A program made the position numbers and the translations under genes. Positions 7,378-57,623 of a stretch of 64,000 bases of DNA are shown piece after piece (the first letter of the stretch is position 1; the number at the start of each line of letters is the position of its first letter). The notes beneath the pieces were generated by a model that worked only from the letters and a program-made list of their open reading frames with translations, was not told the DNA's origin and made no database searches. This DNA comes from Hyaloraphidium curvatum SAG 235-1 (lineage: Eukaryota > Fungi > Monoblepharomycota): contig JAIVFI010000018.1 in assembly GCA_025558095.1 (NCBI GenBank), forward strand, positions 558,001 to 622,000. Direction: 5' to 3'.

Positions 7378-8839
7378 TCAGATCACACAGACGCTCTCCA
7401 GTGTCGCCTGCACGCCCAGCCCGCGCACAATGCCCCACAATGCGGCTGCTGCCGTGACCACGGTGACCGCGACGGTGCGCAGCAGGCCGTACGTCACCTG
7501 GAGCCCCAGCCAGCGCGCCATGGGCGCCTCGTCCGCGAGGCAGCCGAGCAGGTCCGCGTGGTCGCGCGCGGCGCTTGCCGCGGCGGGGGAGATGGTGGGA
7601 GCTTCGACGGCGAGGGCGCGGAGGAGGGTGCGGCCGGATGAAAAGATCGCGCCGACCGCCTCGATGCGGGCGTTGCCCGCCGCGGTCGGGAACAGGTAGC
7701 CGAAGGTCAGCCAGGCGACGAAAAAGAGCCACGTAAGCTGCCAAGCCGAAATGCACGAGGCCGTGGCGGCCGTGACCACGATCGAGACGAGGATCGAGCG
7801 GATGACGAGGCGCACGTGGCGGCCGGCCACCGTGTGCTGGGCAAAGTTGCGCACCGCCCCGACGGCGCTCCACGACGGCACGAGGCGGCGCTGCAGCTCG
7901 GCGTACGGGGCCGGTCTGCGCGGGCTGGTGACGAGCGTCTCTGGGTCCTCGTAGGCGGCCCGGACCAGGTCTCCGACGGCGACGGCCGCCGCGCGGCGCT
8001 GCAGGCGCCGTCGACATCTCCATGAGGGGTGTGTTCGGCACCGACGCAACGCGCAGGGTGTGCATGGGCAAGGTGACGAGAACCGGCGCGCACGCCAGGG
8101 CGCCGACCAATGCGCCCCACGGCGTCTTCCATACGGTGCTCCCCAGGGAGACGAGCGGAGTCCAGAAGGACATGACGCAGGGAGCCAAGAAGACCACGTA
8201 GAGAAACGCCATGCTGACGAGGTACTGCAGCGCCGCCTGGTGCGGCAGGCCGCCGGCGCAGCTCTTCAAAGGGCAGGGACACAGCTCGTCCGCCGGATCG
8301 TGAGTCACGAGCCGGCTCACGGCAGAGTCCGTCACCGTGCCGTCGCTTGCTTTGCGGGCGCCGTCCGTGTCCGGGACCAGCAGTGCCGCCCACGCGTGTA
8401 TCAGGCGGGCCCCCTGCGGCGGACCGCTCGGCCGCCGCGTGCGGTATCGGATGATGTACTCCACGTTGGTGAACGAGTTGACTGCCGCGAGCAAGGCGAA
8501 GGTTGCCAGGCTCGCGTACGCCGCGCCGGTCTGGAGCGCGGGCGCGACGGCGAGCGACGCGCCGTTCAGGGCCAGCGAGGCGGAGAAGAACACCGTCAGC
8601 CCCACGAACCCGGTCGTGGTCACCGCCACGCCCATGCTGAAGTGCTGGAGGCGCTGCAGCGCGGCGAGGAGCGGGGAAAATCGCTCCACGGCCGCGTAGA
8701 CCTCGGAGTCGGGGGGCGGGGAACCCTCGGGCGTGGACGGCGGCGGCGCGGCGAAGGGGAGGCCGGGAATCGAGGGCTGCGCGGGGCCGGAGGATGGCAG
8801 GATCGCTCGCCATTCGGCGGCGGTGAACGAGGTCTCCAT
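7378..8839 (-). pseudogene. 7-TM GRL/DUF3537-like family, copy 1 (single +1 frameshift near 8011)
   Basis: ORFs 7295..8839 and 7378..8049 join at ATG-GAG-ATG-TCG-(A)-CGG-CGC-CTG-CAG; the paralog reads MELSRRLQRR. Seven hydrophobic segments, HDPADELCPCPLKSCAG, and C-terminal ARWLGLQVTYG. Confidence 0.8.
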
Positions 8840-8998
8840 CTCGCTGCGTTTCGTCCAGTCTGCGGTCAGACTCGACGATCCCTTCCCCCAGCCTGGGGCT
8901 CTACCTGGGGGACAAGTTGGAGCCTACTTGAGCCCGGAAAATCTCACACAACCACGCCGGCACTCCACGCATCTGGCCCGATTTCCGCCCACCCCGCC

Positions 8999-10393
8999 TC
9001 AGGGCACGTACGCCACCCTCCCCGTCTGCCCGAACTTTTCCAGCAGGTGGAACTCCTTGAGCGCGGCCTTGAGCGGCGCGGGCCGCACCACCGGCTTGAT
9101 GTGGCCCGCGGCGACGGCGGCGAGGACGTCGCGGAGTTCTTCGACGGTTCCCCTGCGGCGGCGGATGATGAGCACGTCGTGCGCGCGCCGGGGAGGGGTA
9201 CCGACCAGATGGAGGTGAGGAGCTGGCCTTCCAGGAACATCATGGGAATCTGGCAGTTACGTGACGAATCAGGATGAGACAGAGGGATGTGTTGCGCAAC
9301 CCACGAAGCTGATCTCGGTCCCAAGGACCCCCGCGCCGACGTTGACCACCCGTCCTGCGTTCTGAATCAGCCAGCAGTACCCGTTTCGGAGCCCCATGGA
9401 CACCCACCCCTCGGCCCGATGGCGCTCAGCCCAAGGTTGATCGTCTCGGGCACCGCAACGCAGTCCAGCACCACGTCCACCGCCATCCCCTTGTCCTTCA
9501 GGAACCCCAGCAGCTCCGCGCTCGCCACCGCGTGGTTCGCCCCCGCCTTTTTCGCCTGCTCCAGCGCCTCTGGCTTCCTGTCCATCCCGATCACGGTGGC
9601 GCCGAGGTGCTTTCCCACTTGGATCGCGTTCAGCCCCAGGCCGCCGCAGCCGATCACGAGCACCACGTCGCCCTTCTTGACGCCGCCGACGGCGGTGGCG
9701 GCGTGCCAGGGCGTCAGCACGGCGTCGGTGGCCACCGCCGCGACCTGCGCACGTGCACCGCGTGAGCCCACGTCCCCTGGCGCGGCGTGCACCACGGGCC
9801 CACCTCGGCCGACACCCCCTCGGGAACCTCCACCAGATCCCTCCACCCGCACTTGACGTACTCGGCCCACGTCCCGTCCAGGCCCAACCCGTACCACGCC
9901 CTCGTGGGAGCCTGGCACGCGTTCTCGTGGCCCGAGGCGCAGCACCGGCACACGGCGGGGTCCTTGGACCGGCACGGGTTGAGGCAGTGCACCGCGTACA
10001 GCCTGTCCGTCTTGATGGAGGGGGGGACGGAGGAGCCGAGGAGGACGGGGTGGCCGGCGCCTTCGTGGCCGAGCTGTGGAGGAAAGAGGTTGGGTGGTTG
10101 GCCGTGCAGGTGATCGGGAGTGGAGGGGGGCCGCCGAGGAGAAGAGGGCCGGTCGGTACCCGCCGGCGCCGCATCCCGCCGCCACCCACGGTGAACTCGA
10201 CGTCCGGCAGAATCGGCGCCAGCGTGGAGTAGCAGTGGGCATCCGTGTGACAGAGTCCAGCAGCGGCAACCTTGATGAGGACCTCCTCGGGCCCGAGCTC
10301 CTTGGGCACGGGCACGCGGGATTCCACGGGCTCGGGGGCGCCCTTGCGAAAGCGGAAGGCGAGCATGGTGTCGGGGATGGAGGGGGCGGACAT
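8999..10393 (-). CDS. Zn-dependent medium-chain alcohol dehydrogenase (multi-exon)
   Basis: GLCHTD, LGHEGAG, structural-Zn cysteine cluster, Rossmann GCGGLG, DAVLTPWHA. Confidence 0.92.
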
Positions 10394-11010
10394 GTTGCCG
10401 TGCGGTGGGGTGGAGGGAGACAGGAGACAGGAGGTTGAGAGTGGCGAAGTCCGCTGCGCCGTCGTGTCTCCCTTCCGTGTCGCGAACCAGACGATCGAAT
10501 CCGCCGTCCTTCCGCTGAACAAGCACCCATGCAAAGCTACCGAGCGTCGCCGGCCGAGATCGGCCCGACTTGTCGAGTTCTCGCGCGGATTCATCGGGCG
10601 AGCCGCCCAGAGACCGCAGCGCCCGTCCAACGCAGCCCCGTACGAGGCACGCGAGGCGCAGGGCGACAGCAACGACGGCAAAAACGCGCATATCTTCTAC
10701 TCTCACGCCTCTGCTGGTCGGGATTGGTAGGCAAAAGTTCAAAAGATATAGCACCACGTATTCCCGTGTGGTCTCCCACCACAGTACTGACGTGGCTCAT
10801 ACCAGCTTAACTTCAGTGGTCTGACGAGAACTGGTGCTTTCTGGTAGATATGGCCGTATCTGAAAGTCATAATGAGCCAGATAACTATATTGGAACGGCG
10901 TTTGATTCCTGCTGCTTGGACCTTGGACCTAGCACAGCAGGCGGCAGCAGCTCAGCGTCCCTCCGCCGTGACTGTTTACACCGATCTCTGTCCACCCCCA
11001 CTCCCTCCCG

Positions 11011-12279
11011 ATGTCGGCGGCCCCCGCCGCGCGCCGCGTGCGCATCCCGCGGGCGCGAGTGCCGCCGCGGCCCGCGTCGGCGCCCCCGGCTGCGATGCTG
11101 CACTCCGACTCTGAGGACGAGCGGTCCGAGCCCGACGACGCGTTCGACGACGGCGGCGGCGGCCCCGTGCCGGCGAAGGATGACTCAGCTGCCGATGGGG
11201 TCGGGGCGCACGGGGAGGCCGGAGCGGGAGAGGCGGCGGACGACCTGCCCGCGCTGGTGCGTGCGGCGGTGGGGCCGTCCTCCGCCGGCGTGCTCGACCT
11301 GCGCCCGCCGGCCGAGTTCGCTGCGGCGCGGCTGGTGCGCTCCGTCGGCGTGCCGGAGCTGCGCGAGGACCGGCTGGTCGAGCTGCCGAACAGATACCGC
11401 CGCTTCGCCGCCGTCGTCCCGCGCCGCCTGCCGTCGGGCGACCACGACGCCGCCACGCGCGCCAACCTGGACTTCCTCGCAAAGCAGCGCTACGCCCCGA
11501 GCCCCGTCATCGAGGTGCCGCCGCGCACGGACCCCGACCACGCCGCATTCTGGGCCCGCGTGCCGCCGGAGCTGCGCGCGCAGGGCCGCTCGTGGCACAC
11601 GCTGTTCCGCCCCACGCCCGGCCTGGAGCGCCTGCTCGGCTCCGTCGAGCGCGGGCTGGCATCGCGCTTCGGCCCCGGTCCGCAGTGGGACGCAGTGGAC
11701 CTCGGCTCCGGCGCCGGCCGCGACGCGCTGTTCCTCCTCGCCCGCGGCACCCCCGCCGCCCTCGCCACCGACGCCCCCGACCCGCCCCCGCTCCGCCCGT
11801 GGGCCGTCACCGCCGTGGACCACCTCCCCCGTGCGCTGCTCAAGGCCTCGGCCCTCATCGCGCGGCACCTCGGCCCCCTCTGGACCCCGGCCTCGGCCGC
11901 GCGGTTCCGCCCCGTGCACGCCGAGTTCCGCCGCGACGGCTCGGTGCGGCACTACCCCCCCTCCCCCCCTCCCCCCACCGACGCCCCTCTCCCCCCGCGG
12001 TTCGACGCGCGCGCCTACCACCTCGTCACCGCCTCCCGCTTCCTCCCCCCGCGCCCCTTCTGGCCCTCCCTCCTCCGCATGGTCCGCCCGGGCGGCTACC
12101 TCCTCATGTGCACCTTTGTCGAGGGCACCTACCACCCGACGTCGCCGGACCACTTTTTGTACCGGGGCGAGATGCGCGCGTTCCTGGAGCGCGCGGGGGG
12201 GTGGACCGTCTTGGAGGAGGAGGAGGAGAGCACGGAGGAGGGGAAGAGGGTGGTGGTGTTTTTGGCGAGGAGGTCGTGA
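11011..12279 (+). CDS. Rhodanese-like domain plus class I SAM methyltransferase (TehB-like)
   Basis: VLDLRPPAEFAAARL..ELP (rhodanese-like), VDLGSGAGRDALFL (SAM motif I), LVTASRFL, VRPGGYLL; uninterrupted ORF. Confidence 0.75.
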   Translation: MSAAPAARRVRIPRARVPPRPASAPPAAMLHSDSEDERSEPDDAFDDGGGGPVPAKDDSAADGVGAHGEAGAGEAADDLPALVRAAVGPSSAGVLDLRPPAEFAAARLVRSVGVPELREDRLVELPNRYRRFAAVVPRRLPSGDHDAATRANLDFLAKQRYAPSPVIEVPPRTDPDHAAFWARVPPELRAQGRSWHTLFRPTPGLERLLGSVERGLASRFGPGPQWDAVDLGSGAGRDALFLLARGTPAALATDAPDPPPLRPWAVTAVDHLPRALLKASALIARHLGPLWTPASAARFRPVHAEFRRDGSVRHYPPSPPPPTDAPLPPRFDARAYHLVTASRFLPPRPFWPSLLRMVRPGGYLLMCTFVEGTYHPTSPDHFLYRGEMRAFLERAGGWTVLEEEEESTEEGKRVVVFLARRS

Positions 12280-13249
12280 AGACCGGCGGGGCGGGGGTTG
12301 CGGCGATGGATGCCGCGGCCCGATGGGTTACCGGACGTGGAGGGACGATGATGGCTGCGGGCACCGCATCGGAGCTTCCTATGGCTGGAAGACCCGGTGC
12401 ATCGGCAGGTTGCGCGGCGAGGGTCCCGCACGGCGGCAGGCGGACGTCGATGGATGCGGACGCCGGATGCTTCTTGTGATCTGATGTATTCGAGGTCGCG
12501 GTTTCCTCGCACATCCGTCCTTCGGTCTCGCAAACCCGCCCGCCCGATTCGCCGCCGCGTCCGATCCGACTTCCGTCCGCCACCGCTTCCGCACCACCCC
12601 GCGCACCGTCGGACATCCTGCCGACAAGGAACGATGTGATGCTCAGTCCGGGTGCGTAGCGAAGCTTGGGCCGCGGGAGCGCAAGGCTGCCCCGCCCCGA
12701 TAGACCCATGATCTCCCACACGAACCGGCCTGATGCCCCTCCCCGGTCCTCCTCAGAGCACCATCGAGTCCGACCCCTTGCCCTTGTACACGCCTCCGAA
12801 GGCGACCTTGGCGGCCGCCTGCCGCAGCTCCTCAGCGATGGCCGCCCGGTCGCCGTAGCACCACCTCTGCGGCGCGGCGTCGCGCTCGAAAACCCAGTCG
12901 TCGTCGACGAGCTTGTCAAACACGAGCGACATCTCCTCGGCGGTGCCGGGGAAGAAAACGGGCGCTGGGCTGGGAGGTGCGGAAAGTCAGCCGCCGCATC
13001 CGAGCGTCCGTAGGTCCCAGGTGCTCCTCACTCTTGAAAGTCCCGTCCATGCGGTACATCTTGTAGTACCAGTGCCTGCTTGGAAAGCGGTCGCCTTGCT
13101 CGCTTTGTCCATGAGCCGGTCCCACTTGTCCACCGCCTCCCTCTTCACCTCGAAGGACCTCAGGTTCTGGCTGGCGGGGGACGTCACCGATGGGCGCATT
13201 CATCGCCATCATCCCCTGGATGGACCTCATTGCGTCGCATTAGAACGTC

Positions 13250-13620
13250 AAGCGGATAGTGGAGCAAGCCGTGGAGCACCTCGGCGGCCCCCTCGACGGC
13301 CTCGTCGTGAACGTCGGCACCGTGCTCCCCGCCCCAGGCCTCGCGCTGGTTTTGCAATCCCGGATCCTTCTCCTATTGTTTTTGAGCCATTCGCCGTGGA
13401 GACGTTCGGCCGCATGGGACCCCTGGATAAGGCATCCCTCAAGACGGCTGCATGCTCGGCGCACCAAACCGCCCCGGCAGGGTGCTGAGGGCAAGGACGT
13501 GGATGTGGACGGCCAGGTGGCCCGCTACACCGGCCGCTTGCGCGCTCTCGTTGCCATCGGGCGCGCCCTTGGGTGCCAGGCCCAGCTGCGAAAGGTCCGT
13601 CGCGCATGCGTCACAAAGGG
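13250..13620 (+). pseudogene. Mosaic relic: SDR-like fragment followed by retroelement RLE-like fragment
   Basis: IVEQAVEHLGGPLDGLVVNVG (SDR beta4 region) is followed in another frame by FEPFAVETFGRMG (RLE E-T-x-G motif); frameshifts and stops are present. Confidence 0.45.
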
Positions 13621-13891
13621 TCTCCTTTCTACGCCGGTTGGTATCCAGCTTCTCTCTCCCGTTGATGTAACGGACGTAGATGGTGCAGGGTGATTAGCGG
13701 AGGAGTGTAGTGTAGCCCCGGGAGAGTAGAAGAGTAGAACTTGATTCAGAGGCAAATCTTGATTGATATCCCCGATCGATCGCGTCTGATTGTGGCATTG
13801 CAACATGGCCGTATGGCCGCAGTCACCAACTAGAAGGGAATCATCACCAGGTTGGGACCCCGAGTCTGCTACCGCCCCAGTTACCGCAACG

Positions 13892-14332
13892 ATGTCGGAA
13901 GGTCCCAAGTTCTTCACCGACGCTGGTGGCCCCGGCAACACCTTCTCCTCCCAGTACCACTACTCGCAGGCCGTGCGTCTGGGCGGAATCGTCAAGCTCT
14001 CCGGCCAGGGCGGCTGGGACCTAGCTGGAGGGCTCGACGGCGCCGATGCCGCGGGCCAGGTCAAACTGGCCTTCGACAACATCGACCGCATCCTGCGCGA
14101 AGCCGGGCTGCGCGGGTGGGAAGACGTCTACCTCGTGCGCTCTTTTCATGTGGATAAGATGCCGAAGGAAGGCAACACCTACGACTACACTACGCGGAAG
14201 CTCAAGGAAAGGCTGCCTGGTCACCGTCCCGTTTGGACCGCGGTCGCGGTGCCGGAGCTCGCGTTCCCGGGGATGCTCGTCGAGATCGAGGTCGAAGCCT
14301 TGGTGGGCGGCGATGCCTCGCAAGCCAACTGA
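13892..14332 (+). CDS. Rid/YjgF/YER057c/UK114 family protein (single exon)
   Basis: YSQAVR..VKLSGQGG, AFDNIDRILREAG, VYLVRSFH, PVWTAVAV..L..PGMLVEIEVEA. Confidence 0.9.
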   Translation: MSEGPKFFTDAGGPGNTFSSQYHYSQAVRLGGIVKLSGQGGWDLAGGLDGADAAGQVKLAFDNIDRILREAGLRGWEDVYLVRSFHVDKMPKEGNTYDYTTRKLKERLPGHRPVWTAVAVPELAFPGMLVEIEVEALVGGDASQAN

Positions 14333-14370
14333 ACTAGCCGAACATTGGTCGGCCTTGTGATGTTCGGCCA

Positions 14371-14410
14371 AGGGTGGACTTTAGGAACAAAGGGTGGACT
14401 TTAGGAACAA
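14371..14410. repeat. Perfect 20-bp tandem duplication (AGGGTGGACTTTAGGAACAA x2)
   Basis: Read directly from the sequence, between two convergent gene ends. Confidence 0.95.
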
Positions 14411-14481: not shown

Positions 14482-15841
14482 CTACTTTCCCTTCGGCCCT
14501 TCGAAGCATTCCACGGCGCCCTGCACCACCTCTTTGAACACGCGCCCGAAATCCTCCTCGCTCTCGGTCCTCCCCAGCCGCACGACGATCATGTCCGCCG
14601 CGGGCGCCACGAGGATCATCTGGCCCTGGTAGCCGTTGGCCATGAACCACCCGCGATTCTCGTACCCGTCCTTTGGGATCCTGGGAACGGGAAGGATGTC
14701 AGTGCCGGCGTCAGCCGGGCAACGGCGGATCCACCGACCACCAGTGCATCCCGTAATCGAACAGCTCCTCCGTCTTGTAGTTCACCGCGCTCCTCTGTCT
14801 CGCAGTCTCGCACCACCCTGCGGGCAGCAGCCTCTCCCCCTCCCACACCCCGTCCCGCAGATACAGCAGCCCGAACCGCGCGTAGTCCCTCGCGGCGGCG
14901 AACAAAAACGACGAGGCGATCCAGACCCCCGCCGCGTCGAACTTGGGCTCGGCCGATTCCATGCCGATGGGGTCGAACAGGTTCCGCCTGAGCCAGGAGA
15001 GGGCGGGGGCGTTGACGTAGGCATCCGTCTGCGGGGAGCGGAAGCGGAGGTAGGTGGTGACGGGGAAGAAGAACCGCCCCGCGAAGCCGAGCCAGGACCG
15101 CCGCACGGGCTGCTGGGCGGTCGGGAGCAGGCCGAGCGCCGAGAAGCACGCGCGGCAGACGATGTTGGAGGTGCCGGAGGAGTAGTACCAGCTCGAGCCG
15201 GGCTTCTTTATCGGCGGCGCCGAGAGCGCGTAGAGGGAAACGTCCGAGGACCAGTCGAGGAACAGCATCCTCACGACGTCCGGGATGGAGAACTTGCCCG
15301 CGTCGTCGTACAGCGTGTACCGCTCGAGAAAGTCCAGCCCGGCGCGCATCCGGAGGAGGTCGCCCATCGTGATGTCGCCCCGCGGATCGCCGGGCGCGGA
15401 CCATTCCTTGAGCACCGTCCGCAGCGGGGTCTTCAGGGACTCCTCCACCGATTTGAACCCCTCGGTCTGCCCGAGCTGCACGATGCGACCGACCATGTAG
15501 TGCGCGAAGCTCTTTGCCGTCGACCACGAGATGAGCTTGGTGTCCTCCGTCGTTCCGGCCGACGCGTTGTACCGTTCCGCGACGATCTTCCCGCCCTGGA
15601 CGACGACCAGCGCCAAATGGCCGTCCTTGCCGTCCCGCACGTCCGCATCGTACTTTTCCAGGAGCGCCTTGAGCCTGGCCCGGTCGTAGGGCCGGCCGAT
15701 GTCGGGCAGGCCGTCGGCGCCGGTGGGGTGCCGAGGCCATTCGGCGGTCGGGAAGGGGACGCCGGGCGGCTGCGGCGGGAACCGTGGGAGCGCGATGGGA
15801 TCGGGCACGGGCTGGTCCGGCGCGGATCCCGCGGTGGCCAT
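14482..15841 (-). CDS. Class C beta-lactamase-like / NylB-type serine hydrolase (spliced)
   Basis: SWSTAKS (SxxK), ITMGDLLRMRAGL, WYYSSG, LFDPIGM, ARDYARFGLLYL, FMANGYQGQMI..VVRLG. Confidence 0.9.
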
Positions 15842-15936
15842 CGCTGCGGAAGTTCGCGGGGGGACGATCGCCGGGGGACGAAGAGGATCAACCGTCGAAG
15901 TTCAACCTTCCGAAGACAGCCGTAGACAAGACCACG

Positions 15937-17392
15937 ATGGACACCACGTTTACCGACGCCGAGTGGCGTGCTATCCTACCGACATCCGGCCCGGCGCAGC
16001 CCGCGATTCCCGGCTCCCCGTCGTCGCGCCGCCGCCGCCTCCCACAGGCCCCTCACCGTCGGATTCCGAGATTTACGCGGCCGCCGCGCGATTCTCCCCT
16101 CTCCTCGCCGCGTTGCAGCGTGTACAGCAGCTCTGCATGGGCGTCACTGCGACCACGGCAGCCTTCGTGGGGATTATTTCCCTCTTTGTCATTGCCCTGG
16201 CCCTCAACGGCGCGTCGCTCGCCCTCGCGCCTGCGCTCCAGACCGGCGCGGCATACGCGAGCTTGGCAACATTCGCCTTGCTCGCGGCCGTCCACTCCTT
16301 CACCAACGCGGAGTACATTATCCGGTACCGCACGCGGCGGCCGAACGGCCCGCCGCAAGGGGCGAGACTGATCCACGCCTGGGCGGCTTTGCTGGCTCCG
16401 GACACGGACGCGGCTCAAAAGTCAGGCGACGACACTGCGATGGACTCCGCTACGAGCCGACTTGTGGCCCACGATGCCACGGATGAACTGTGTCCCTGTT
16501 CTTTGCCAAGCTGCGCCGGTGGCCTGCCGCAGCAAAGGGCGTTTCAGTATCTTGCCAGCATGGCGTTCACCTACGCCGTTCTAGCAGCTCCCAGCTTCGT
16601 TTCGTTCTGGACTCCGCTTGTCTCTCTTGGGGGCATCGTATGGAGGACACCGTGGGGGGCGCTGCTCGGTGCCCTTGCATGCGCTTCGATTCTCGTGCTC
16701 CTGCCGATTCACGTCCTGCGAGTTGCATACGTGCCGAACGCACCCCTCATGGAACTTTCGCGTCGTCTACAGCGGCGAGCGGCTGCCCTCGCCGTCGGGA
16801 ACCTGGTTCGCGCCGCCTCCGAGGACCCCGAAATCCTCGTCGCGGTCCGCGGAAGCCGGCCCCGTATGCCGAGCTGCAGCGCCGTCTCGTTTCGTCCTGG
16901 AGCACCGTGGGTTCGACTCGCAACTTCGCCCAGCACACGCTGGCCGGCCGCGTCGTGCGGCTCTACATCCCTGCCCTCGTCATCTCGATCCTGGTCACCG
17001 CCGCGGCGGCGTCATGCATTTCGGCATGGCAGCTCCTTTGGCTCCTGTTTTTTTCCTGGCTCACCTTTAGCTACCTCTTTCCCACCGCCGCGGGGAACGC
17101 CCGCATAGAGGCCGTCGGGGCCATCTTCTCTTCCGGCCGCACGCTCCTGCGGGCCATCGTCGTCGAAGTCTCCACCATCTCCCCTGCCGCTGCGAGCGCC
17201 GCGCGGGACCACGCCGACTTGCTCGGGTGCCTGGCCGATGAGGCGCCCATGGCCCGCTGGCTCGGGCTGCAGGTGACGTACGGCCTGCTGCGCACCGTTG
17301 CGGTCACCGTGGTCACGGCAGCAGCCGCATTGTGGGGCATTGTGCGAGGGCTAGGCGTGCAAGCGACCCTGGAGAGCCTTTGTTTGAGCTGA
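15937..17392 (+). pseudogene. 7-TM GRL/DUF3537-like family, copy 2 (two -1 frameshifts, about 16014 and 16843)
   Basis: Close paralog of copy 1 in inverted orientation: MDTTFTDAEWRAILP..., HDATDELCPCSLPSCAG, and an identical ARWLGLQVTYGLLRTVAVTVVTAAAALWGIVRG; spread over three frames. Confidence 0.8.
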
Positions 17393-17429
17393 TTCCGACG
17401 TCGAGTGTATGAATTTGCACCTGTTACCG

Positions 17430-17560
17430 CGTTGCAAGATTGCGTGGGCCCGTTCCCCCGTCGCCGGCCCCTTGCGCCCGCAGTTGGTGAAGCTATATGA
17501 AGCGGGCGGGTGCAGTGATGAGCAGGAGGAGCAGCGAGTCATGTGGCTTTACGCTCCCGA
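17430..17560 (-). pseudogene. Detached fragment of the Zn-finger exon of the WW gene at 19632-21488
   Basis: YSFTNCGRKGPATGERAHAILQ versus YSCTNCGRKGPARGERTHALCK; DNA is nearly identical to 20290-20365. Confidence 0.8.
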
Positions 17561-17784
17561 ATGCGAGTTGGCGTCGACACCGGCGAGGAGGGCGAGTGGA
17601 GTAAGAAGGCCAGAAGACCTGGATGACGTGCAGCGGGCAGGCCGATTGTCACGAACCGCACGCGCACTGGATGTACATCCCCCGTTCTGGATGTACATCT
17701 TTGAGTGTTCCGTACCGGTGCCTTGTAGAGACTTTCGTCTGCTGCGGCTTTTCCGAATCGCCACACCCCCGCACCACGATCTCT

Positions 17785-19367
17785 TCACGCCCCGCAGTAA
17801 CTGCTCAGCACCACACTGACCCCCAGACCCCTCAGCAGCCCATAGGCGGCGAACCCGACCGTCAGGGAGGTCACCAGGAACGCCCTCGCGGTGCCGAAGC
17901 TCACCTCGATCCCCAGGAACCGGGCAGGGTCGCCGGCCGAGGAAAAGGTGCGGAGGCGGTCGGCATGACAGGCGAGCGCCACATGGATCGCCGTGCGGTG
18001 TTGGGAAGGGGCGTGGAGCGACTCGGACTCAGCCGCGGCGACGAGCAGAGCCTCGACCCGTATGCGTGCCTGCAGTAGCAGTTTACGCACGCTCGTGATG
18101 CGGGCGTTGGCGGCGGCGAGCGAGGTGATGTACACCATGTGGTAGAAGATCCACCAGGCAATGTAGGCGATCTGCCATGCCGGTATGCAGGAGCCGGCGA
18201 CGACGTTGGCGATCCCGCCCGCGACACATCCGAGGAGGGAGGAGGAGATGAAGAAGGCCACGGTGCTAAAGCCGCGGGCCTGGCGATCGCGGGACCAATC
18301 CGCGGCGAGCTGAAGGAACAGCTGTGCGTACGGCTCGGAGTCCATGAGGGAGGACGTGAGCTCGCCCGGGTCGCTGACTGGCAGCGGACGGCTGTCCGAG
18401 ATGCCGCCCTTGTCCGGGTTCCCGCCCGTATTGTCTGGTCTAACGCCAAGGAGCAGTCCCCGGTAGCGGTCTAGCAGAGCTGTGAGCGCCCGCCCCATCG
18501 CGCGGCGCTGCAGCCTCCGCGACAGCTCGACCATGGGCGGGTTGGGACTCCGGAATAGCTGGCCGCATATCGCGTAAAGCGTGACAACGTGGGAGGCGAT
18601 GTTCACGACGCCCAGGAGGGCCGACCACCACGTGGTGAACCAAATGGAACCGTACGTCACCATCGGCGTCCAGCACGAGAAGATCGGGATCGTGAAGGCG
18701 ACGAGCGAGATCCGGATGGCGCTTTCGGCCAGAAAGTAGGTAGCCACACGCCCCGGAAGCTGCCCGGCGCAGGAGGAGGACGGGCAGGTGCAATCGGGGT
18801 CGCGGGCGACGTGCCCAATGAGCGGAGACGGGGCCCGTGGGCCGCTACCGTCCTCAATGTCCGCGTCCTGCCTGCATAGGTCGACCCAGCGGGACAGCGC
18901 GTGCAACATGTGGCTCGCGGGATCGGCCACAAAAGCCCAGCCACGGTAAATCATCAGGGCAGCGCCGAAGAAGGCTAGTCCCTGTGAGGCGGCGAGGGCG
19001 GCCGTGCCCGCGGCGATTTGGGCTGGCGAGAAGGGCACGTCGACGAGGGCGGGCAGCGCGGCCATGGACACCAGCGCCGCCAGCGTGGAGACGGTTGCAG
19101 CGATCGGATAGAGCGGGCGGCTCCTCGGCCCGCGCGCCATGAGCACCGCCCGCGCGCCCTGAGCACCGCCCGCGCGCAGAAACCCAGCAGCGGGGACGCC
19201 CGGGCAGCCGCGGCGACCAGGGACGCGTTTGTCGGCCGTGTCGCCGCCCGCAGCTCACAGGCACGTTCGGCCCCACCGTCCGGCGGCGCGGGCTCGCCCG
19301 GCCACGGAGCCGCGGGGCCCGCCACGGCAGGCAGTACCGCGAGGAGCTCGGCCGGCGTTAGCGCCAT
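17785..19367 (-). pseudogene. 7-TM GRL/DUF3537-like family, copy 3 (frame broken by a 20-bp tandem duplication at 19131-19177)
   Basis: MALTPAELLAVLP start, HVARDPDCTCPSSSCAG, LSRRLQRRA, GSCIPAWQ, ARFLGIEVSFG..LSSYC. Confidence 0.8.
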
Positions 19368-19631
19368 TTGAAGTGCAGGTGAGACTCTTTCGGATCGGAC
19401 GCGCCGTTCCTGGCGGTCCTGATCGGCCCCGCAATGCGGTCTAATTCCACCGCCCCACCTCAGTGTACATTCAAGGAGTTGCTGGACAAGTGCTGGCAGA
19501 AGCAGGTTGTGGCTGACCCCTCCGAACGAGAGCTGACTTGCGAGCGAGGAACACGAACGGTACAGAGAGCAGATCCGAACCAATCGCGTTCGCGGAAGGC
19601 ATGGGTCCACCCCACCAGATCCCCTTTTGGC

Positions 19632-21488
19632 CTAGTACCTCCCCTGCCCCGGCGGCGGGTTCGGGTTGGGATGCGCCCCGGGCCTGCTGGACCCCCCCGG
19701 GTTGTACCCCCCGGTCCTGCCCTGCCCGTACCCAGGCTTGCCCGATCCGCCACCGTACCCTGGCTTGTTCGATTCCCCATGCCCGGGGTTGTGCCCCGAG
19801 CCGCCGTGGTCGTGGCCCTGGCCATGCGATCCGCAGTGCGGGCATCCGGGGCATCCGTGCCCGTCGTGCCCGTGCTGCCCGTGATCTCCATGCCCGTGGC
19901 CGTGGCCACCCGCATGGTGGCCGCAATGGTTGCACACGGCACCGTTCCAGTGGCTACCGCAGTGCGGGCAGGACGCGCCCGGCCTCGGGGGCGGCGGAGC
20001 GTGATGTCCGCACTTGTTGCATGCGTTGCCGTTCCAGCGGTTCCCGCAGCGCGGGCAGCTGCCCTTCTTCTTTGCAGCCGCCGCGGCGGCGGCGGCCATT
20101 GCGGCCATGAAGCCCAGATCCGGGCCGGATGCGGGCGGCTTGGCGGGGGGCGGATTGGACTTTGGCGGGGGCGGCTTGGACGGCGGGGGCTTGGAGGCTG
20201 GGGAGGGGCAGCACGTCGCGCAGTAGTTGACCTTGCTGTGCGGACGTCAGCATGGCTCTGCACGGCCCCGTTGCGAAGATGACCCACCAGATCTTGCAGA
20301 GCGCGTGGGTCCGTTCGCCCCTCGCCGGCCCCTTGCGCCCGCAGTTGGTGCAGCTGTATGCCGCGGACGAGGGCGCGAACGGCATGGCGTGCTTCCGCGT
20401 GCAGAGGGGCTTCAGCGGGGGAGGTAGATTGGGTGGGGCGGGAGGCTTGCCCTGGGGCGCCGCAACGTCGCCGGGCTTGGAGGCCGGAGGCGGCTTGGAT
20501 TTGCCGTCGTCCTTGGCCTTGTCCGCCGCGGGGCCGGGTTCCTTGCCGGGCTTTGTTTCCACGACCTCGGTCCGCGGATCGTCCCTGTGCTCCTCGTCAG
20601 TTCTTTACATTGAACCAAGCAGATTGATGTCACTTGCCAAGTGATCAGCGGGGGCGCTTTGTTCTTGTCGGTAAAGAACCAGCGGCTTGACTTCTTGTCG
20701 TAGTTCTTGGTCCAGCCCGCCGGCAGCGGGGCCTCCTCCTTGGGCGTCTGGTGCGAGATCGACGGGTCGGGCGGCGTGAGGTGCGAAGGTTCGGCCGCCT
20801 CGGGCTGCGAGGCAGAGGCGGGCGCTGCGGGAGGCGTGGCAGGAGGGTCCGCAGGAGGTGCGACAGGAGGCGAGGCAGGAGGAGCCGCAGGAGTTGCCGA
20901 AGGAGCTGCAGGAGGCGTTGATCCAGTGGCGTCGGAGGCGGGCTTGCCATCCTCGGCGCCCTTCTTTGCCCCGCCCAACGCAGTCATCCGCTTCGCCTCC
21001 ACCGCCAGCGTCTCCATCTGCAGCCGCCTCTCGGCCTTTTCCAGGTTGGCCCTCAGCCCTTCGAGCTTGGACTCGTCACCTTGAGTCGCCGCCGCCTCGA
21101 CCTCGGCCTCCAGCCTGCCAACGTCCTCCTTTTTCGCCTCGATCCTCTCCGGGCTGCCGATGCCGGCCTCCCCCAGCATCACTATCAGGCTCTCGATCTC
21201 TTCCGCGCGGGGGTCGTCCCACGTCGACTCGCCCGAGGGGTCCACGAAGAACCACTCGCCCGACACCTCGTCGAGGGACGCGGACCAGCCGGTGGGGAGT
21301 GGCACGGGAATCGGGAGCGGCGTCGGGGGCGGGGCGTCCTCCTCGGGCTCCGCATCGTCGGCGAAGCCGTCCGAGGCGGCGTCGTCGGCGGGCGGCGCGG
21401 CGGGCTGCTCCTCGGGGGCGGGCGGCGCCGCGCCGGCCGGGGGCGGGTTCGCGGCAGCGGGCCGTGCGGCAGCTTCGGCAGACCCCAT
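19632..21488 (-). CDS. WW - coiled coil - WW - Cys/His zinc finger - His/Cys/Gly-rich tail protein (spliced)
   Basis: LPTGW...WFFVDP..STWDDPR; LPAGW...WFFTDK..ITW/DDPR; CTRKH..CTNC..H..CKIC..NYCATC; two CxxC-GxxWNG-xx-CxxC-GHH units. Confidence 0.8.
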
Positions 21489-51291: not shown

Positions 51292-51443
51292 AGTTGCCGA
51301 ACGATCTGACGCGATGCCGATGAAAGACGTTCGGAAACAGGGTTGCAAGTTCAAACTCTGCTGCGGAGGAAGGCGGACTGTGGCGGGAACGGCCGCAGTG
51401 TTTGCGTTTGTTTGGACGCCGGCCACGCTACAACTTCCGCCCG

Positions 51444-52687
51444 ATGCGAGTTGGTCCGGGCCTATTCTGTCCAGTTCGTCGCCGCCATGCAGTGCTACGA
51501 TCGATTTCTGGAGCGGCAGGGACGTTTGCCGGGCCTCCGCGGCCATCTTCGAGGCGTATCAAGGCGCCGTCGGGCGGACGACGTGCCCTCTCCGTGGCGC
51601 ACAAAAGGACGGCGGAAAGGGCCGAGCGGTTGCTGAAGCTCGCCGAGTCGACGCGTTTGCGTCGGCGTGTCGAGGAATTGGACGCGTCGGGCGATATGAA
51701 CGGCATGCTGGCGAGCGTTGACCGCGAGACGTTGGCCTTCGAAACACTCCGCGACCGGGTGGCCGAGCTGCGGCTGGCGGACGAGCTGGCTGCGCTGGAA
51801 GACTCGGAGGAGGCGGCCAAGGTGCTGGAGGAAGCGGCAGTTGCCGTCGCGGCTTCATTGGAGCAACTGCCGGAACTCCTCCTCCTGACGCTGCTGGGCG
51901 GCCCATACGATTCCCGACCAGCCTACCTCACGATCACCGGCGCAGGAAACAGCCACGGCGAGGACACGCACCTCTTCATCTTGATGCTGGAGCGGATGTA
52001 CCTGAAGTGGGCCGAGGCCGAGGGCCGCCCTGCCAGGACGGTGCTTTCCGTACCCGCACTCCCGCCGGGCCGTCCCAGGTGGACCTCGAGATCGACGGCC
52101 CCTACGCGTACGGTCTCCTGCGGTGCGACCACGGCGTGCACCGCTGCGCGTGGGTGACGGAGTTCAACCGGCTCGGCAAGCGGCAGACCACCTTTGCCGC
52201 CGTCGAGGTCGTCGCCGTCCTGGACGACGCCGACTTTTCCTCGGAACTGGAGATCGCCCCGCAGGATCTGCGGATTACCACCATGAGCGGCCCCGGCGGG
52301 CAGAGCGTCAACCGGACCGAGTCCGCCGTGCGGATCGAGCACCTCCCCACGGGCATCCAGGTGCGCGCAGAGGAGCACCCGAGCCAGCACCAGAACCGCA
52401 GGGCGGCCATGGCCCGCCTGCGCGCGCGGCTGGCGGTCGCGCTGGAGGAGCAGAGGGCGGCGAGGGTGGATGAGATCAGGGGGGAGGCGGTGCGCGCGGG
52501 GGAGGGGGAGGTGGCGAGGCATTACCTGCTGCTGGGGAACAGGAGGGTCAAGGACTCGAGGACGGGGCACGAGACGTTCGGTACCGAGGCGGTGCTGGAC
52601 GGGGAGCTGGATGGGTTCCTCCGGAGCTACCTCCGGTGGAGATCGCGGGACTATGTAGCTGCGCTAGGCAAAGAAAGTCCTTCCTAA
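51444..52687 (+). CDS. prfB: Divergent bacterial-type peptide chain release factor 2 (PrfB-like), Arg-rich N-terminus, -1 frameshift near 52060
   Basis: GPYD..A.LTI, MLERMYLKWAE, GPYAYGLL..HGVHR, GKRQTTFAAVEV, SGPGGQSVNRTESAVRIEHLPTGI, VKDSRTGHET..VLDGELDGFL. Confidence 0.82.
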
Positions 52688-52956
52688 GTTGCAGCTTCGA
52701 GCCCGCATGAAGTCAGCGAATCATGAATTGAACAGTGCGTTGATGTACTACAAATTCCGCCACCTGCGGCGACCTTTCCTTGGCCGGGTATAGATGTCCA
52801 CCTCCCCCAGTGTCCTCCGCTGTTCCCTCCTCGCTGGCATGTTGCGCCGATTGGCTTACCGTGTGATGCTCACTCATGTTCGAAAAAGGGCATGATCTCG
52901 TCGCGCATCCCGAAAAACGCATCCAAATCCGGGCAGTGGGCCGTGCTGAAAACGCA

Positions 52957-53012
52957 GTTCAAGGCTTTTGTACCCTGGCCTGCTGTTCAAGACTTTTGTA
53001 CCCTGGCCTGCT
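52957..53012. repeat. 28-bp tandem duplication with one mismatch
   Basis: GTTCAAG[G/A]CTTTTGTACCCTGGCCTGCT x2. Confidence 0.9.
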
Positions 53013-54735
53013 GTGAAAGCCATGAACTGCCTGATCCAGCCCGGGAAGGTATCGTGATTTTTCGTCCAGAAACACCTGCGATCCTGCATGCCTAACCTGG
53101 TAAAAATCGGCTTAAATCATCTCCAAGTACCGCAACTTCTCCCTCGAGTGAGATGCACGCTGATGAGCTGCCTTGCGTGCCCGCGTTTCTTCAATCGTAG
53201 GAGGCGGCGGCGAGGCGGACTCGCTTCGCACGGCCGGCGAGCGCTCGTGTTCCACGGGGGGCGGCGACTCAGGGCGTAGCCCACCAGGCCGTTGCCGAGC
53301 GACATCTGGCGCGACTGGGGTTCCAGAAGAGGGAAAGCGCCAGTGTACCACCGAGAAGCGCCGACGTTGACTACGTTGGCAAGCAGCGGTTGTCCGTGCG
53401 GCGTCTCGACGTGCTTGGGGGGTACCGAGGGCGCCCACCATGGTGAGGGCGGACCAACCATTGACAGGCGGGAAGGTCGGCCCTGGCGCCCATTGGGAGG
53501 GCCAGGAATTGGGGTTCGGCAGCAAGGGAGCTGGATTGGGGTGTGGCGGCAGAGGAATGTAGGAGGGCGGCGGTCCCGGAACGGCCACGGCAGCCATTGG
53601 GGAGGCGACCCCTGCCCGGGACCGGTTCAGTCGGCGTAGCCCATAGCTAGGGGCAGAGCATGTGCTGATAACGTGTCAGGCTCGACGTCTGGTCGAACCC
53701 CTCGAACACCGACAAAACCGATGGATTGTATGGGCGGCGGAGGCCCGACCTAAATGCATCGGCGGGAAAACGGCTGTGGCGCAGTGAGGCGCTGTCACAT
53801 GAGCCCACACAACCACCGATCCCGACAGCCGACGCTGGCCCCGCGCATCATCGACTCCCCCTGGATCGACAGTATTCAATTCCGCAGCGCCCTTCGCCGT
53901 CGGCAGGGCAGCCAGAATATGCGCCGCTTCGCGCTCCTCGGCCAGGTTTGCCAAAGTCGGGCTGCCGACTCTGGGAGCGGGTGGTCCGCGGCGCGGCCTG
54001 CCGTCGGTCAGCAATGGCATAGAAACGGTCGAGGAAGGCAGGAGTGGGAATTGAATTCGGCGAGAACAAGCCGAGGGACGGGTGTGCTTCGTTTAAGAAG
54101 GGTCGTCCGGCCGCGACGCGCGGTGCGGCGCTCCGCTGCCCCGTGGCTGCAGCGGACGGGCGGCGCGTTCGGGCCGGCGCGGCCTTGCCCTGGCAAGAGA
54201 CCCGTGCGCTCTGCGCACAAGTGGGCGCGCCTGAGCTTTAGGAAAAGGGAACGCGGGTAGTCGATTGCGGAAGAACGACCGACCCAGAGGACGCGTCTCG
54301 TCTAAGTCCAACGATAGTTCCGCATACGTTCCTGCAGACCAGTCATCAAAGAACGGTGCTCAAATACGAAGACGTGAGATGTCGCCGGCTGCATCACATG
54401 CCGTGCGAGAGTGGCTTCCACTTTCGAGGGGAAAACTGGACTTCTATACTTTCCAGCCGCTGGCCGTACGCAAAGCGCTACGGCGCCGCGCAACCGTTCC
54501 TGAAACCACAAGGTCCCATCCAGCTGATGCCCCGTTTCCCCGCGGATCAGCCTCAGGACAGCGCGACGTGCACGGCGGGGTGCACCGCGGGCTTCGGCTG
54601 CAACACCGCTGAGTTGTGACATCCGGCTCTCTACATGCGGATACCTTTACGACCTGATGCACCAATAAGGCTCTGTGCCGCCCGAGGCCGCCGCTCGAGG
54701 CCAGGACAACTTAATGACCCGCCGGAGTCCCACCG

Positions 54736-56202
54736 TCAACCGTAACACGTGGTCTGAAGTGTAAACGCGACGCCGGCTCCTCGCAAACCACCCCAAACGG
54801 CGAACGCCGCCGTCAACGCCGCCACAACCACGGCCCTCGCCGTCCCGTATGTGATCGGGAATCCGAGCAGCTTGGCGCGGAACGACGAGATCGACCCCTC
54901 GAGCTCCGCGAGGAGGTCCGCGTGGTTCCGGAGCGAGGCTAGCGCGGAAGCCATTGCGGGATCGGAGCCGTGGAGGCGGTCAGCGGCGAGGAGCAGCTCC
55001 CGCGCCGCGAGGCGCGCGGATGCGTACAGGCCCGCGGCATCGGTCGCGACGGTGTTGCACGCCGCGACGGTGGCGAGGTCCATGGAGGATTGCACGAGGA
55101 CATTGGCGGCCAGTGCGAGTTGCCATGCTGCAACGCACCCGGAAGCGAGATTTAAGGCCAGGGCGAGAGCGGAAAGGGCCGCGGAGGCGAGCAGCCAAGC
55201 CCTAATGAGCCCTAGGTACGCGAAACGGTGCGACCAGTCGATGGAGAGGAGGGCGTGGATACGGAGGTGCAGCTGCGAGTTTGGATCGGGGGAGGGGTCC
55301 GCGGGGATTAGATCGTCCGATTTTAAAGGGCCGGCGAGAAGGAACGTGCGGAAAGAGGAGATGAAGGAGCGAAGAGAAGCATCGAGCGCGCGGTGTTGGA
55401 TGCGCCGGAAAAAGGCGAGGGTGGGGTGCGTCTGGATACTGAATGCACGCGTGTAGGCGGTCAGGACGTCTGCAAGGAGAAACTTGACGAACACTAGGAC
55501 GCCGGCCACGGCACCCCAGGATGTCCACAAGGCGCCTGCAAGCGCGACCAGGGGAGTCCAGAGCAGCAGGACGAGGATGAGTCCCCATCTCGACACGTAG
55601 AAAGCGAAATCGGCAAGGCGCGCCAGGCCATCTGATCCCACGACGCGACCGGCGCAAGAGGCGGCGGGACACGGGCACAGACGGTCCAGGGGGTCGTGCC
55701 GCAAGAGAACGGAATGAGGCATCGTCTGCCGCAGCCAGATCCAGCGTAGTGCCGAGGCCAGCGGGTGCCAGTCGCCAAGGCTATTCCGCGAAGGGCGACG
55801 CGTCCTAGCGGTGGCAAGATACATGAACAAATCGGGCAGCGCACCGCCCATAGCAGCAACGCAGCCCAGGGCGAGGTGCGAGCCTGAGAAAGGGGGCCTC
55901 GGCGCGTTCAAGCCGGTCCAGACGAGCGCAGGCAGCACCGATACCAAGACGAGTGAGTAGCGCAGGAGAGGCCGGCTGAGCAACGGGGCACCGACGCGCC
56001 AGAAAGACGACGCGGCGGCGATCGCGGGGTATCCGGCGTCGCGGAGGGAGCCAGGCACGTCCAAAGGGGACCGCTCCCGTTCTGCCTGCGCCGTGTCGTC
56101 AGGAGGCCGTCCGAACCCGCGGAACGGCCCCGGTGCGGCGGGCGCGATGACGAGCCATTCCTTTGCGTCCAGGTCGGCCGCTGAGGGCGCGTTGGCCTCC
56201 AT
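54736..56202 (-). CDS. 7-TM GRL/DUF3537-like family, copy 4 (intact ORF)
   Basis: Uninterrupted ORF: DLDAKEWL, HDPLDRLCPCPAASCAG, WTPLV, RRIQHRA, SGCVAAWQ, HADLL, AKLLGFPITYGTAR..VWGGLRG..TTC. Confidence 0.85.
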   Translation of the reverse strand: MEANAPSAADLDAKEWLVIAPAAPGPFRGFGRPPDDTAQAERERSPLDVPGSLRDAGYPAIAAASSFWRVGAPLLSRPLLRYSLVLVSVLPALVWTGLNAPRPPFSGSHLALGCVAAMGGALPDLFMYLATARTRRPSRNSLGDWHPLASALRWIWLRQTMPHSVLLRHDPLDRLCPCPAASCAGRVVGSDGLARLADFAFYVSRWGLILVLLLWTPLVALAGALWTSWGAVAGVLVFVKFLLADVLTAYTRAFSIQTHPTLAFFRRIQHRALDASLRSFISSFRTFLLAGPLKSDDLIPADPSPDPNSQLHLRIHALLSIDWSHRFAYLGLIRAWLLASAALSALALALNLASGCVAAWQLALAANVLVQSSMDLATVAACNTVATDAAGLYASARLAARELLLAADRLHGSDPAMASALASLRNHADLLAELEGSISSFRAKLLGFPITYGTARAVVVAALTAAFAVWGGLRGAGVAFTLQTTCYG

Positions 56203-56297
56203 TTGGGTCCGGTCCACGCTGCTGACGGCGATGGCTTGTACAGCACGCATGCGATAGTCGGACCTTACAGCGCCGATCGAAACCGTTGGCTGTGAAC

Positions 56298-57623
56298 ATG
56301 ATGCGCCCGAAACGGCCTTCTTTACGCGAAGCAGCTGTCGAGATTGAACTGCGCCGCGAATCCGAGGGCCTCCTCGGCGCGCTCATCTTCCTGGCCGCCC
56401 TTCCCGCATACTCCTCGCCGTTCATCTCGCTACCAGTCGGACCCTTTGCCGCAGGCGTAGTTGCCTGCGCCCTTTAATGATAAACGCGTTTATGTTGCTG
56501 CGCGTCGCCGTGCGCCGGAGCCACCAACTTCGAGGCTATCACGACACGGTGGCCCCATGGGCCAAGCAAATCTTCCGATGGGAATCCCTGCTGCCTGCGG
56601 ATGGAGAAGGATCCCCGTCGTCGGCGCTCGTCGAGCACATTGCCTGGGACGAGCAGCGGTGCACCTGCCCCAGGCCCTCGTGCGCAGGCAAGCTCCCGAG
56701 CCAGGCGGCCGCGTCCTACCTCATCGTCGCCGTTTTGAGGATCGCCCTTTCGCTGGCCGTTTTCCCGGCTTTGCTGTGGACTCCCCTCATCACCCTCGGC
56801 CATTCCGTATGGTCGACCTGGTGGGGTGCCATCGTGGGCGCCCTCCTTTGTGCGTGCGCCACGGTCAGCGCGCTGCCGATAGCCTTCAGACAGGCCATGT
56901 TTCCCATCCAGCGCATGACCGAGCTGTCCCTGGGCATACAGCGCAGGGCCGCTGTCATTGTCGTCGGCGAACTCGTGCGGACCGCCCGGGAGCAGCCGGA
57001 TTCCCTGGCGAGGGTTGCCCATGACGCCCCGGCCGCGTACGTGGCGTTTCATCGCCGGATGTCGGGATCTTGGCACTCGCAAGAAAATTCGGCCATTGTG
57101 CACGGTTTCGCCCGCAGCCAGGTGTACGTCAGCCTCCCATTGCAGCTTCTGGGCCTGGCTCTGAATGCCGTGAGTGAGCTTAATTGCGTCGCTGGTTTCA
57201 CCAGCGTTGATACCTGCTTAGGCCGTTGGTGGATGCTTCACCACCTGGCAGTTCTTGATCATTTTCGCCACAGTGCAGATTTCCTTTGCCTTCCGCCTCG
57301 GCATTGCCGCCGCCAACGCCCGCGTCGCGGCCGTCACCGAAGTTTACGATTCTGGACGCACGGCGCTGCTCCAGTTGCTCGTCCAGTGGCCTGACATGCC
57401 GCCCGCAGCCGCTACGGCGATCAGGGATCACGCCGCGCTCCTTGGATGCCTTGCCGCCGAGGCGCCGCTCGCAAAGTGGTTGGGGTTTACCGTCACCTGG
57501 GGCCTGGTCCGAACGCTCGCGGTGACGGCGCTCACGGCGTTCGGCGCCCTCTGGGGCATCGTGCGCGGGCTCGGCGTGACCGTGACGATCGAGTCGGTTT
57601 GCGGAGTCGAGAAGCTCATATAG
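56298..57623 (+). pseudogene. 7-TM GRL/DUF3537-like family, copy 5 (frameshift near 56474, intron 57170-57221, N-terminus short)
   Basis: HIAWDEQRCTCPRPSCAG, WTPLI, IQRRAA, GGCFTTWQ, DHAALLGCLA, AKWLGFTVTWGLVR..IESVC; head-to-head with copy 4. Confidence 0.78.

Follow-up and report, generated by a model that had tools for sequence, protein, structure and literature searches.

The window analysed here is a 64,000-nucleotide stretch (G000:C18:558001-622000; ~67 % G+C) of the genome of the aquatic, early-diverging fungus Hyaloraphidium curvatum SAG 235-1. It harbours five related loci for proteins with seven transmembrane (TM) segments. One is an intact gene and the other four are decaying copies, and together they sample locally a family of several hundred genes. 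Predicted structures support the reading that these proteins share the fold of the seven-transmembrane ion channels (7TMICs), the superfamily of the odorant receptors (ORs) and the gustatory receptors (GRs) of insects. In the explanation that is considered probable here, the family consists of tetrameric ligand-gated channels of this fold which together form a chemosensory repertoire. The repertoire is unusually large for this channel type in a non-animal, and the window is unusually rich in decaying family copies.

Exactly five related loci were detected in the window, both by tblastn with copies 3 and 4 and by a six-frame search with a family hidden Markov model (HMM), i.e., a profile built from 79 family members. 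Each of the five paralogs listed in an earlier, sequence-based description of this stretch (the original prediction) was recovered at its coordinates by both approaches. Family membership accordingly stands for all five, but five intact proteins do not exist, since only copy 4 constitutes a single open frame. Lengths are given in amino acids (aa).

7378..8839, minus strand: copy 1, all seven TM segments encoded, a single net frameshift near 8011 where the TM4-TM5 loop begins
15937..17392, plus strand: copy 2, transcribed pseudogene, its frame changing near 16014-16060 and again near 16851
17785..19367, minus strand: copy 3, TM1-TM7 in one open frame (17785-19146), N-terminal ~78 codons (19149-19385) out of frame
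54736..56202, minus strand: copy 4, one exon, 488 aa, single open frame, identical to database protein P0001
56298..57623, plus strand: copy 5, degraded or truncated, ~24 aa ahead of TM1, frameshift and TAA TGA TAA in TM2 near 56470

Over the last 125 residues, identity amounts to 90 % between copies 1 and 2, to 54–57 % between copy 5 and these two, and to only 33–37 % between copy 3 or 4 and any other copy. Copies 1 and 2 form an inverted pair (82 % DNA identity), copies 2 and 3 are in convergent orientation, and copies 4 and 5 are arranged head-to-head with 95 bp between them. A further full-length family member, interrupted by one in-frame TAG, is located on the same contig ~13 kb past the end of the window (G000:C18:635013-636554); the local cluster therefore continues beyond the window.

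The hydropathy profile averaged over the 79 members displays seven hydrophobic segments; owing to the loop of only 4 aa between them, TM5 and TM6 appear as a single peak. Median lengths are 73, 74 and 68 aa for the loops after TM2, TM4 and TM6 and 8, 3 and 4 aa for those after TM1, TM3 and TM5, while the N-terminus comprises 85 aa and the C-terminal tail 15 aa. Lysine and arginine residues average 8.3 in the N-terminus and 8.1, 9.5 and 7.9 in the TM2-3, TM4-5 and TM6-7 loops, as compared to 0.9, 0.0 and 0.1 in the TM1-2, TM3-4 and TM5-6 loops and 0.4 in the C-terminal tail. According to the positive-inside rule, this distribution predicts a cytoplasmic N-terminus and an external C-terminus. 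The alternation of long and short loops described earlier from the five copies thus extends to the family, and hydropathy and charge likewise bear out the proposed seven TM segments in N-in/C-out orientation, in both cases as predictions. The proposed lack of a signal peptide agrees with an N-terminus of ~85 aa which is hydrophilic and does not start in a signal-peptide-like manner.

Eight positions are invariant (copy 4 numbering): H169, C176, C178 and C183 in the cytoplasmic TM2-TM3 loop, C356, N383, T464 in the second part of TM7 (TM7b), and C486. The C-terminal motif noticed in the original prediction proved real position by position and reads R442 A443 [RK]444 [FL]445 L446 G447 F448 x [VI]450 [DTS]451 [YFW]452 G453 x x R456, with G447 present in 78 and R456 in 74 of the 79 members and with T464 and C486 following downstream as invariant residues; together with the TM5-TM6 loop, this block is the best-conserved part of the protein. 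In terms of information content, the TM5-TM6 loop stands first (2.80 bits), followed by TM7b (2.67), the tail (2.55), the turn preceding TM7b (2.47) and the His/Cys-containing loop (2.33), and the lowest values are those of TM1, TM2, TM3 and TM5 (1.2–1.4 bits). In copy 4, the elements concerned are encoded as follows.

55654..55698, minus strand: motif H-x6-C-x-C-x4-C (codons H169..C183), invariant, in the TM2-TM3 loop predicted to be cytoplasmic; candidate zinc site
54778..54879, minus strand: residues 442-475, the RA[RK][FL]LGFx[VI]x[YFW]GxxR turn between TM7a (415-441) and TM7b (452-475) together with TM7b, including invariant T464; candidate pore helix
54745..55137, minus strand: span bounded by the codons of C356 and C486, both invariant and predicted to be external; candidate disulfide
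55135-55137, minus strand: codon of C356 (TM5-TM6 loop), invariant
54745-54747, minus strand: codon of C486 (C-terminal tail), invariant

The fold was assessed with two AlphaFold2 models, one of copy 4 predicted with the 79-sequence alignment (predicted local distance difference test, pLDDT, 91.1; predicted template modelling score, pTM, 0.91) and one, from a separate run, of the copy 3 open frame (17788-19140; pLDDT 88.3, pTM 0.87). Both contain seven TM helices, long TM4-TM6 helices running on into the cytoplasm, and a TM7 composed of a cytoplasmic and a membrane helix with the conserved LGF turn between them. In the copy 4 model, TM4 spans residues 229-255 and 259-290, TM5 311-326 and 328-352, and TM6 359-411, and TM7 consists of helix 415-441, a non-helical turn (442-451, LGFxV) and helix 452-475. 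The equivalents in the copy 3 model are 171-195 and 201-230 (TM4), 270-288 and 291-316 (TM5), 321-373 (TM6), and 380-400 and 415-438 (TM7). The copy 4 model further includes short strands (356-358 and 479-481) and, before TM1, short helices (39-44, 49-55 and 59-75) relevant to a possible re-entrant TM0.

In an all-against-all structural search of 48,161 PDB representatives, independent of Foldseek, all insect OR and GR representatives outranked every other chain with both models. These alignments are collinear over ~85–90 % of the target at 6–13 % sequence identity and, for the copy 4 model, begin at model residues 46-56 versus receptor residues 1-12; the next matches cover ~140–190 residues. 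Foldseek places the same receptors first (probability 0.93–1.00 versus 0.2 or less for transporters), and the top 16 entries of its re-examined top 1000 are all insect ORs or GRs. In none of the structural searches did a G-protein-coupled receptor (GPCR) or a transporter rank comparably for either model. The GR/OR-type fold claimed in the original prediction is hence supported at the level of predicted monomer models, and the findings named there in advance as grounds against it (N-out orientation, more or fewer than seven TM segments, GPCR or transporter matches) did not come up. OR-type 7TMICs are characterized by seven TM segments with characteristic packing, N-in/C-out topology, external loops shorter than the internal ones, a long TM4-TM6 anchor domain, a split TM7 and a re-entrant TM0 (Himmel et al. 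2023, 10.1101/2023.08.30.555482). Five of these defining features, i.e., TM count, topology, loop lengths, long TM4-TM6 and split TM7, are found in the sequence statistics or predicted models of the present family. A conserved pore helix and anchor combined with a variable N-terminal bundle is the pattern of ORs and of newly recognized 7TMICs (Himmel et al. 2023, 10.1101/2023.08.30.555482), and is shared by the H. curvatum family (2.67 bits in TM7b versus 1.2–1.4 in TM1, TM2, TM3 and TM5).

The size of the family was approached in two ways. Exhaustive phmmer searching of 1.84 billion cluster representatives with copy 4 yielded 282 representatives at E≤1e-3, each standing for a cluster at 50 % identity, and 174 at E≤1e-10. 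Profile searching of the genome produced 890 first-look candidates, the best 87 of which were scored and all matched (87/87); among these best 87, 86 scored at E 1e-88 or better, 85 at 3e-112 or better, and 83 contained no stop inside the match. Judged from both counts, the family thus comprises some hundreds of members at the least, the majority being intact, and the view of the original prediction that it is lineage-expanded is upheld. Among 20 family matches looked up, 18 are entered as 'hypothetical protein DFJ74DRAFT_... [Hyaloraphidium curvatum]', one is P0001 and one an environmental cluster; every named member looked up carries the label 'hypothetical protein'. When copy 4 and the family alignment were used for a word-indexed protein search, the matches listed comprised self-matches only; as the candidate list was saturated, this outcome is uninformative on relatives.

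The cluster from outside H. curvatum (P0117, P0152) resides on metagenome contigs of 2.9–3.8 kb with 54 % G+C, for which a DNA match in the H. curvatum genome was looked for and none found.

L031:1-2921 and L032:1-2895 (ENA ERZ28593542; JGI 3300043314, 3300050339): environmental contigs on which the family member adjoins an SNF2-related gene

Against the family HMM, the open frame on these contigs reaches 367 bits; its identity to H. curvatum P0009 amounts to 52 %, a value above that between most H. curvatum paralogs. A second environmental fragment (P0156; 60 % identity) is located on a 9.5-kb contig together with a P450 gene, the split structure of which suggests that the contig stems from a eukaryote. 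The family is therefore present in at least one uncultured relative, and judging from these sequences part of its diversification probably predates the split from that relative. A locus search of one further collection with the environmental homolog as query detected no relative.

The favoured explanation would imply the following mechanism. Four subunits would join through the cytoplasmic extensions of TM4-TM6 together with TM7a (the "anchor domain"), and the TM7b helices would line a central cation pore, with T464 as invariant residue and the near-invariant R456 and R474 at its two ends. In each subunit, a ligand would occupy the variable TM1-TM6 bundle in its outer half and open the pore, and the many divergent paralogs would form a chemosensory repertoire evolving by gene birth and death. 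The cytoplasmic residues H169, C176, C178 and C183 probably constitute a metal site, because disulfides are improbable for four invariant residues of ligand type located in a loop on the cytoplasmic side. For the external pair C356 and C486, a disulfide by which the C-terminal tail would be linked to the TM5-TM6 loop is proposed as a probable candidate, because both cysteines are predicted to be external and lie near the short paired strands (356-358, 479-481) of the model.

Several observations weigh against this explanation. All of the structural evidence consists of predicted models. Foldseek E-values range from 0.007 to 0.03, never reaching 0.001, and the corresponding TM-scores (template modelling scores) from 0.31 to 0.47. 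At the sequence level, Pfam searching of the window proteins at E≤1 (7tm_6, 7tm_7, Trehalose_recp, DUF3537) gave nothing relevant and that of the 79 family members at E≤10 no match, and the family profile retrieved no OR or GR chain from the PDB sequences, only chance matches (E≥0.2). The HMMs PF12056 (DUF3537) and PF08395 (7tm_7) found nothing over the genome, a result that is uninformative as control genomes were blank as well. The TM7 motif of animal gustatory-receptor-like proteins (GRLs), (T/S)Yhhhhh(Q/K/E)(F/L/M), was found by regular-expression search of the last 70 residues in 0 of the 79 members. An oligomer prediction with four copies of residues 250-488, in which the alignment was not used, returned a score of 0.00 with partner pLDDT<50, which is evidence neither for nor against a tetramer. 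Four of the five copies in the window are broken, and the TM2-TM3 loop of insect ORs is much shorter than that of the family. Finally, H. curvatum is a non-flagellate, non-motile fungus, for which a large chemosensory repertoire would have no evident use.

The alternative that best withstands the evidence, albeit a rather unlikely one, holds that the proteins adopt the 7TMIC fold without serving as chemoreceptors. In that case they may act as channels that are constitutive or under metal/redox regulation, or as membrane scaffolds without conductance, as may also hold for PHTF and DUF3537 proteins, and their expansion could reflect, e.g., self/non-self recognition or an arms race with parasites. 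The structural matches fit this alternative equally, the invariant H/C/C/C loop on the cytoplasmic side suggests control from within the cell, and an organism without a flagellum performs no chemotaxis. In addition, no ligand has been demonstrated for any non-animal 7TMIC in the parts of the superfamily survey drawn on here (PMC7746228). A conserved pore helix next to a highly variable TM1-TM5 bundle, together with hundreds of paralogs at 25–35 % identity accompanied by decaying copies, is however the signature of receptor repertoires that diversify their ligands, and would be unexpected for a housekeeping channel or a scaffold.

That the resemblance in fold is convergent or an artefact of prediction, the proteins being an unrelated orphan family of 7-TM helical bundles, is improbable. 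The missing sequence or profile link, the Foldseek E-values (≥0.007) and the TM-scores (<0.5) would be accounted for in this way, but not that ORs and GRs outrank all other chains with two independent models and collinearly over most of the target, nor that topology, loop asymmetry, long TM4-TM6, split TM7 and conservation agree independently. Two further searches argue in the same direction. A search by sequence embedding alone returned DUF3537 clusters as 7 of the 30 nearest named clusters (score 0.93), as well as several 7tm_7 clusters (0.89–0.90); with copy 4 as query, DUF3537 occupied rank 21. Shape searching of the ESM Atlas returned unnamed eukaryotic clusters of ~400 aa (TM-score 0.58/0.69; cnidarians and echinoderms being the commonest phyla recorded), and also a chlorophyte cluster of 932 aa (0.57, or 0.33 by target).

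A GPCR-type identity, suggested by seven TM segments and a large, divergent repertoire, is very hard to maintain, since the predicted N-in/C-out topology is the inverse of that of GPCRs, no GPCR is among the best structural matches of either model and no GPCR Pfam family appeared at E≤10; GPCR and transporter readings were thus rejected on topology and fold ranking, as the original prediction had anticipated for GPCRs. Among the explanations weighed, ligand-gated channels of 7TMIC fold remain the preferred one. Since the GRL TM7 motif and any Pfam or profile match are missing, the family is filed at the level of the 7TMIC fold superfamily (as defined by Himmel et al. 2023 and Benton & Himmel 2023), outside the GR, GRL and DUF3537 sequence families.

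Copies 1–3 were searched as separate frame pieces, and copy 5 exon by exon as well as via its database model P0105. The protein alignment of copy 1 with copy 2 is contiguous over the break near 8011, and the frame change of copy 2 near 16851 corresponds to the loss of 1 nt relative to copy 1. In copy 3, the N-terminal ~78 codons are out of frame because of a tandem duplication of 20 nt (20 mod 3 = 2, an exact fit); this part is still recognisable by the HMM (positions 6-78, E 8e-8). Introns were ruled out as the cause of the frame changes in copies 1–3, as the protein alignments are contiguous at the breaks with no spare sequence, and in the case of copy 2 also by unspliced RNA contigs over both breaks. 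The sole true intron found among the five copies belongs to copy 5, where excision of 52 nt brings back the family spacing N-x-A-x-G-x-C.

19138..19177, minus strand: 20-nt tandem duplication in copy 3, 18-nt exact repeat with a period of 20, units starting at 19177 and 19157
57170..57221, plus strand: 52-nt intron of copy 5 (GTGAGT...TTAG), boundary in agreement with the annotated protein P0105

The annotated model of copy 5 (P0105; 56477-57620, plus strand) comprises 337 aa and starts at 56477, inside TM2. It also drops an in-frame stretch of 81 nt encoding YVAFHRRMSGSWHSQENSAIVHGFARS; as this peptide fits the family consensus Y-x2-[LF]H-x2-[LM]-x3-W, the second "intron" is probably a mis-annotation.

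Transcription was examined in the public run X1, an RNA run with a 58-nt GT..AG joint (14679/14738) in the beta-lactamase-family gene encoded nearby on the minus strand. Depth across the stretch ranges from 0 to 667, with 18873-19450 uncovered. Over copy 2, for which alone read evidence on frame changes was obtained, two RNA contigs (15882-16830 and 16828-18224) exhibit neither indel nor splice at either frame change, and the sole contig break in this copy (16828-16830) falls between the two changes. Both frame changes are thus present in the transcripts of copy 2. In copy 3, X1 contigs likewise reach over the 3' part as far as ~18425; the duplication (19138-19177) lies outside their coverage. 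X1 contains 64 % of the sampled words of 54700-57650, of which stretch copy 4 makes up 50 % and copy 5 45 %; since this share exceeds either copy alone, both are probably at least partly transcribed. One 5x contig of run X2 displays a 1-nt deletion at 16823 relative to the assembly. This deletion was rejected as a repair of the copy 2 frame, as it results in a third, wrong frame, and is probably an error or minor variant.

The window also contains other genes. Next to copy 2, a gene of the beta-lactamase family (PF00144; 14616-15841, minus strand) contains a 58-nt GT..AG intron (14680-14737), confirmed by the RNA contig joint, and a RidA / L-PSP gene (PF01042) is located at 13790-14332; RNA contig depth of these two genes is roughly 10–20 times that of copy 2. 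An open frame of 158 aa rich in Gly, His and Pro (19632-20108, minus strand) has no Pfam match and contains two copies of C-P-x-C-G-x-x-W-N-G-x-x-C-N-x-C-G-H-H, possibly a small zinc-finger repeat. Immediately downstream of copy 5, frames for an ABC-2 type transporter membrane domain (PF01061; 57674-59049, minus strand) are split over several frames and probably represent a multi-exon ABCG-type gene.

New here are the state of each of the five copies, the presence of the copy 2 frame changes in RNA, the 20-nt duplication of copy 3, and the environmental relatives of different base composition. As a more far-reaching and tentative proposal, which is possible rather than probable, H. curvatum and its uncultured relatives may have evolved several hundred ligand-gated 7TMIC channels independently of insects, each equipped with a His/Cys3 module for zinc binding on the cytoplasmic side and with a disulfide on the external side. 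If true, this would to our knowledge be the largest chemoreceptor-channel family known outside animals, and would offer an experimentally accessible microbe for studying the role of 7TMICs prior to the existence of animals, the original function of the superfamily of insect ORs and GRs being an open question. Hundreds of intact, diverse and transcribed members in a fungus would demonstrate that extensive birth-and-death repertoires of this fold are no innovation peculiar to animals, and would prompt the question which cues a planktonic, non-motile fungus perceives with them. The family would also supply many natural variants for structure-function work on TM7b, the LGF turn, T464, R456 and the His/Cys loop. 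Moreover, a family escaping all sequence-based annotation shows how much of the superfamily may remain hidden.

Literature linking Hyaloraphidium with the 7TMIC superfamily was looked for and none found in the papers searched, the genus being absent from the main text and one supplement of Himmel et al. 2023; in the portions of the 7TMIC literature considered, an invariant H/C/C/C loop is likewise not mentioned. Resemblance is closest to the insect ORs and GRs (MhOR5 7LIC, AaegOR10, AgamOR28, Gr43a, BmGr9, Gr64a, ApisOR5-Orco), with which the family shares seven TM segments, N-in/C-out topology, loop asymmetry, long TM4-TM6, a split TM7 with TM7b as the best-conserved helix, and a large divergent repertoire including pseudogenes. 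It differs from these receptors in lacking detectable sequence similarity and the TM7 TY...QF motif, and in possessing a TM2-TM3 loop of ~73 aa with the invariant H/C/C/C residues, an invariant external Cys pair and a hydrophilic N-terminus of ~85 aa.

Plant DUF3537 proteins (PF12056), encoded by 4–12 genes per plant (PMC7746228), are the nearest named Pfam family by sequence embedding. They likewise have seven TM segments, an intracellular N-terminus and long intracellular loops, and lack the animal TM7 motif. In contrast to them, no family member is matched by the PF12056 HMM, and the H/C/C/C and Cys-pair signatures are apparently specific to the H. curvatum family.

The GRLs of unicellular eukaryotes and the Class-A Euk7TMICs (Himmel et al. 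2023) are comparable in being non-animal proteins of 350–500 aa with seven TM segments, assigned to the superfamily by topology and predicted fold. As stated in the original prediction, such proteins are known from zoosporic fungi, namely SpunGRL1 and SpalGRL1 of chytrids (Benton et al. 2020, PMC7746228) and 7TMICs recorded in Chytridiomycota and Blastocladiomycota (Himmel et al. 2023). The candidates of Benton et al. 2020 originated from sequence-based searches, whereas the H. curvatum family is without such a link (Pfam, PDB sequences, profiles); the GRL TM7 motif is regarded as diagnostic, though not as definitive (Benton et al. 2020, PMC7746228). Members described from non-animals are few per genome and, in the sections of these sources drawn on, without known ligand or activity: two Spizellomyces species were reported with one GRL apiece, and unicellular eukaryotes with a total of 17 proteins (PMC7746228). 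In contrast, the H. curvatum family comprises hundreds of members in one genome.

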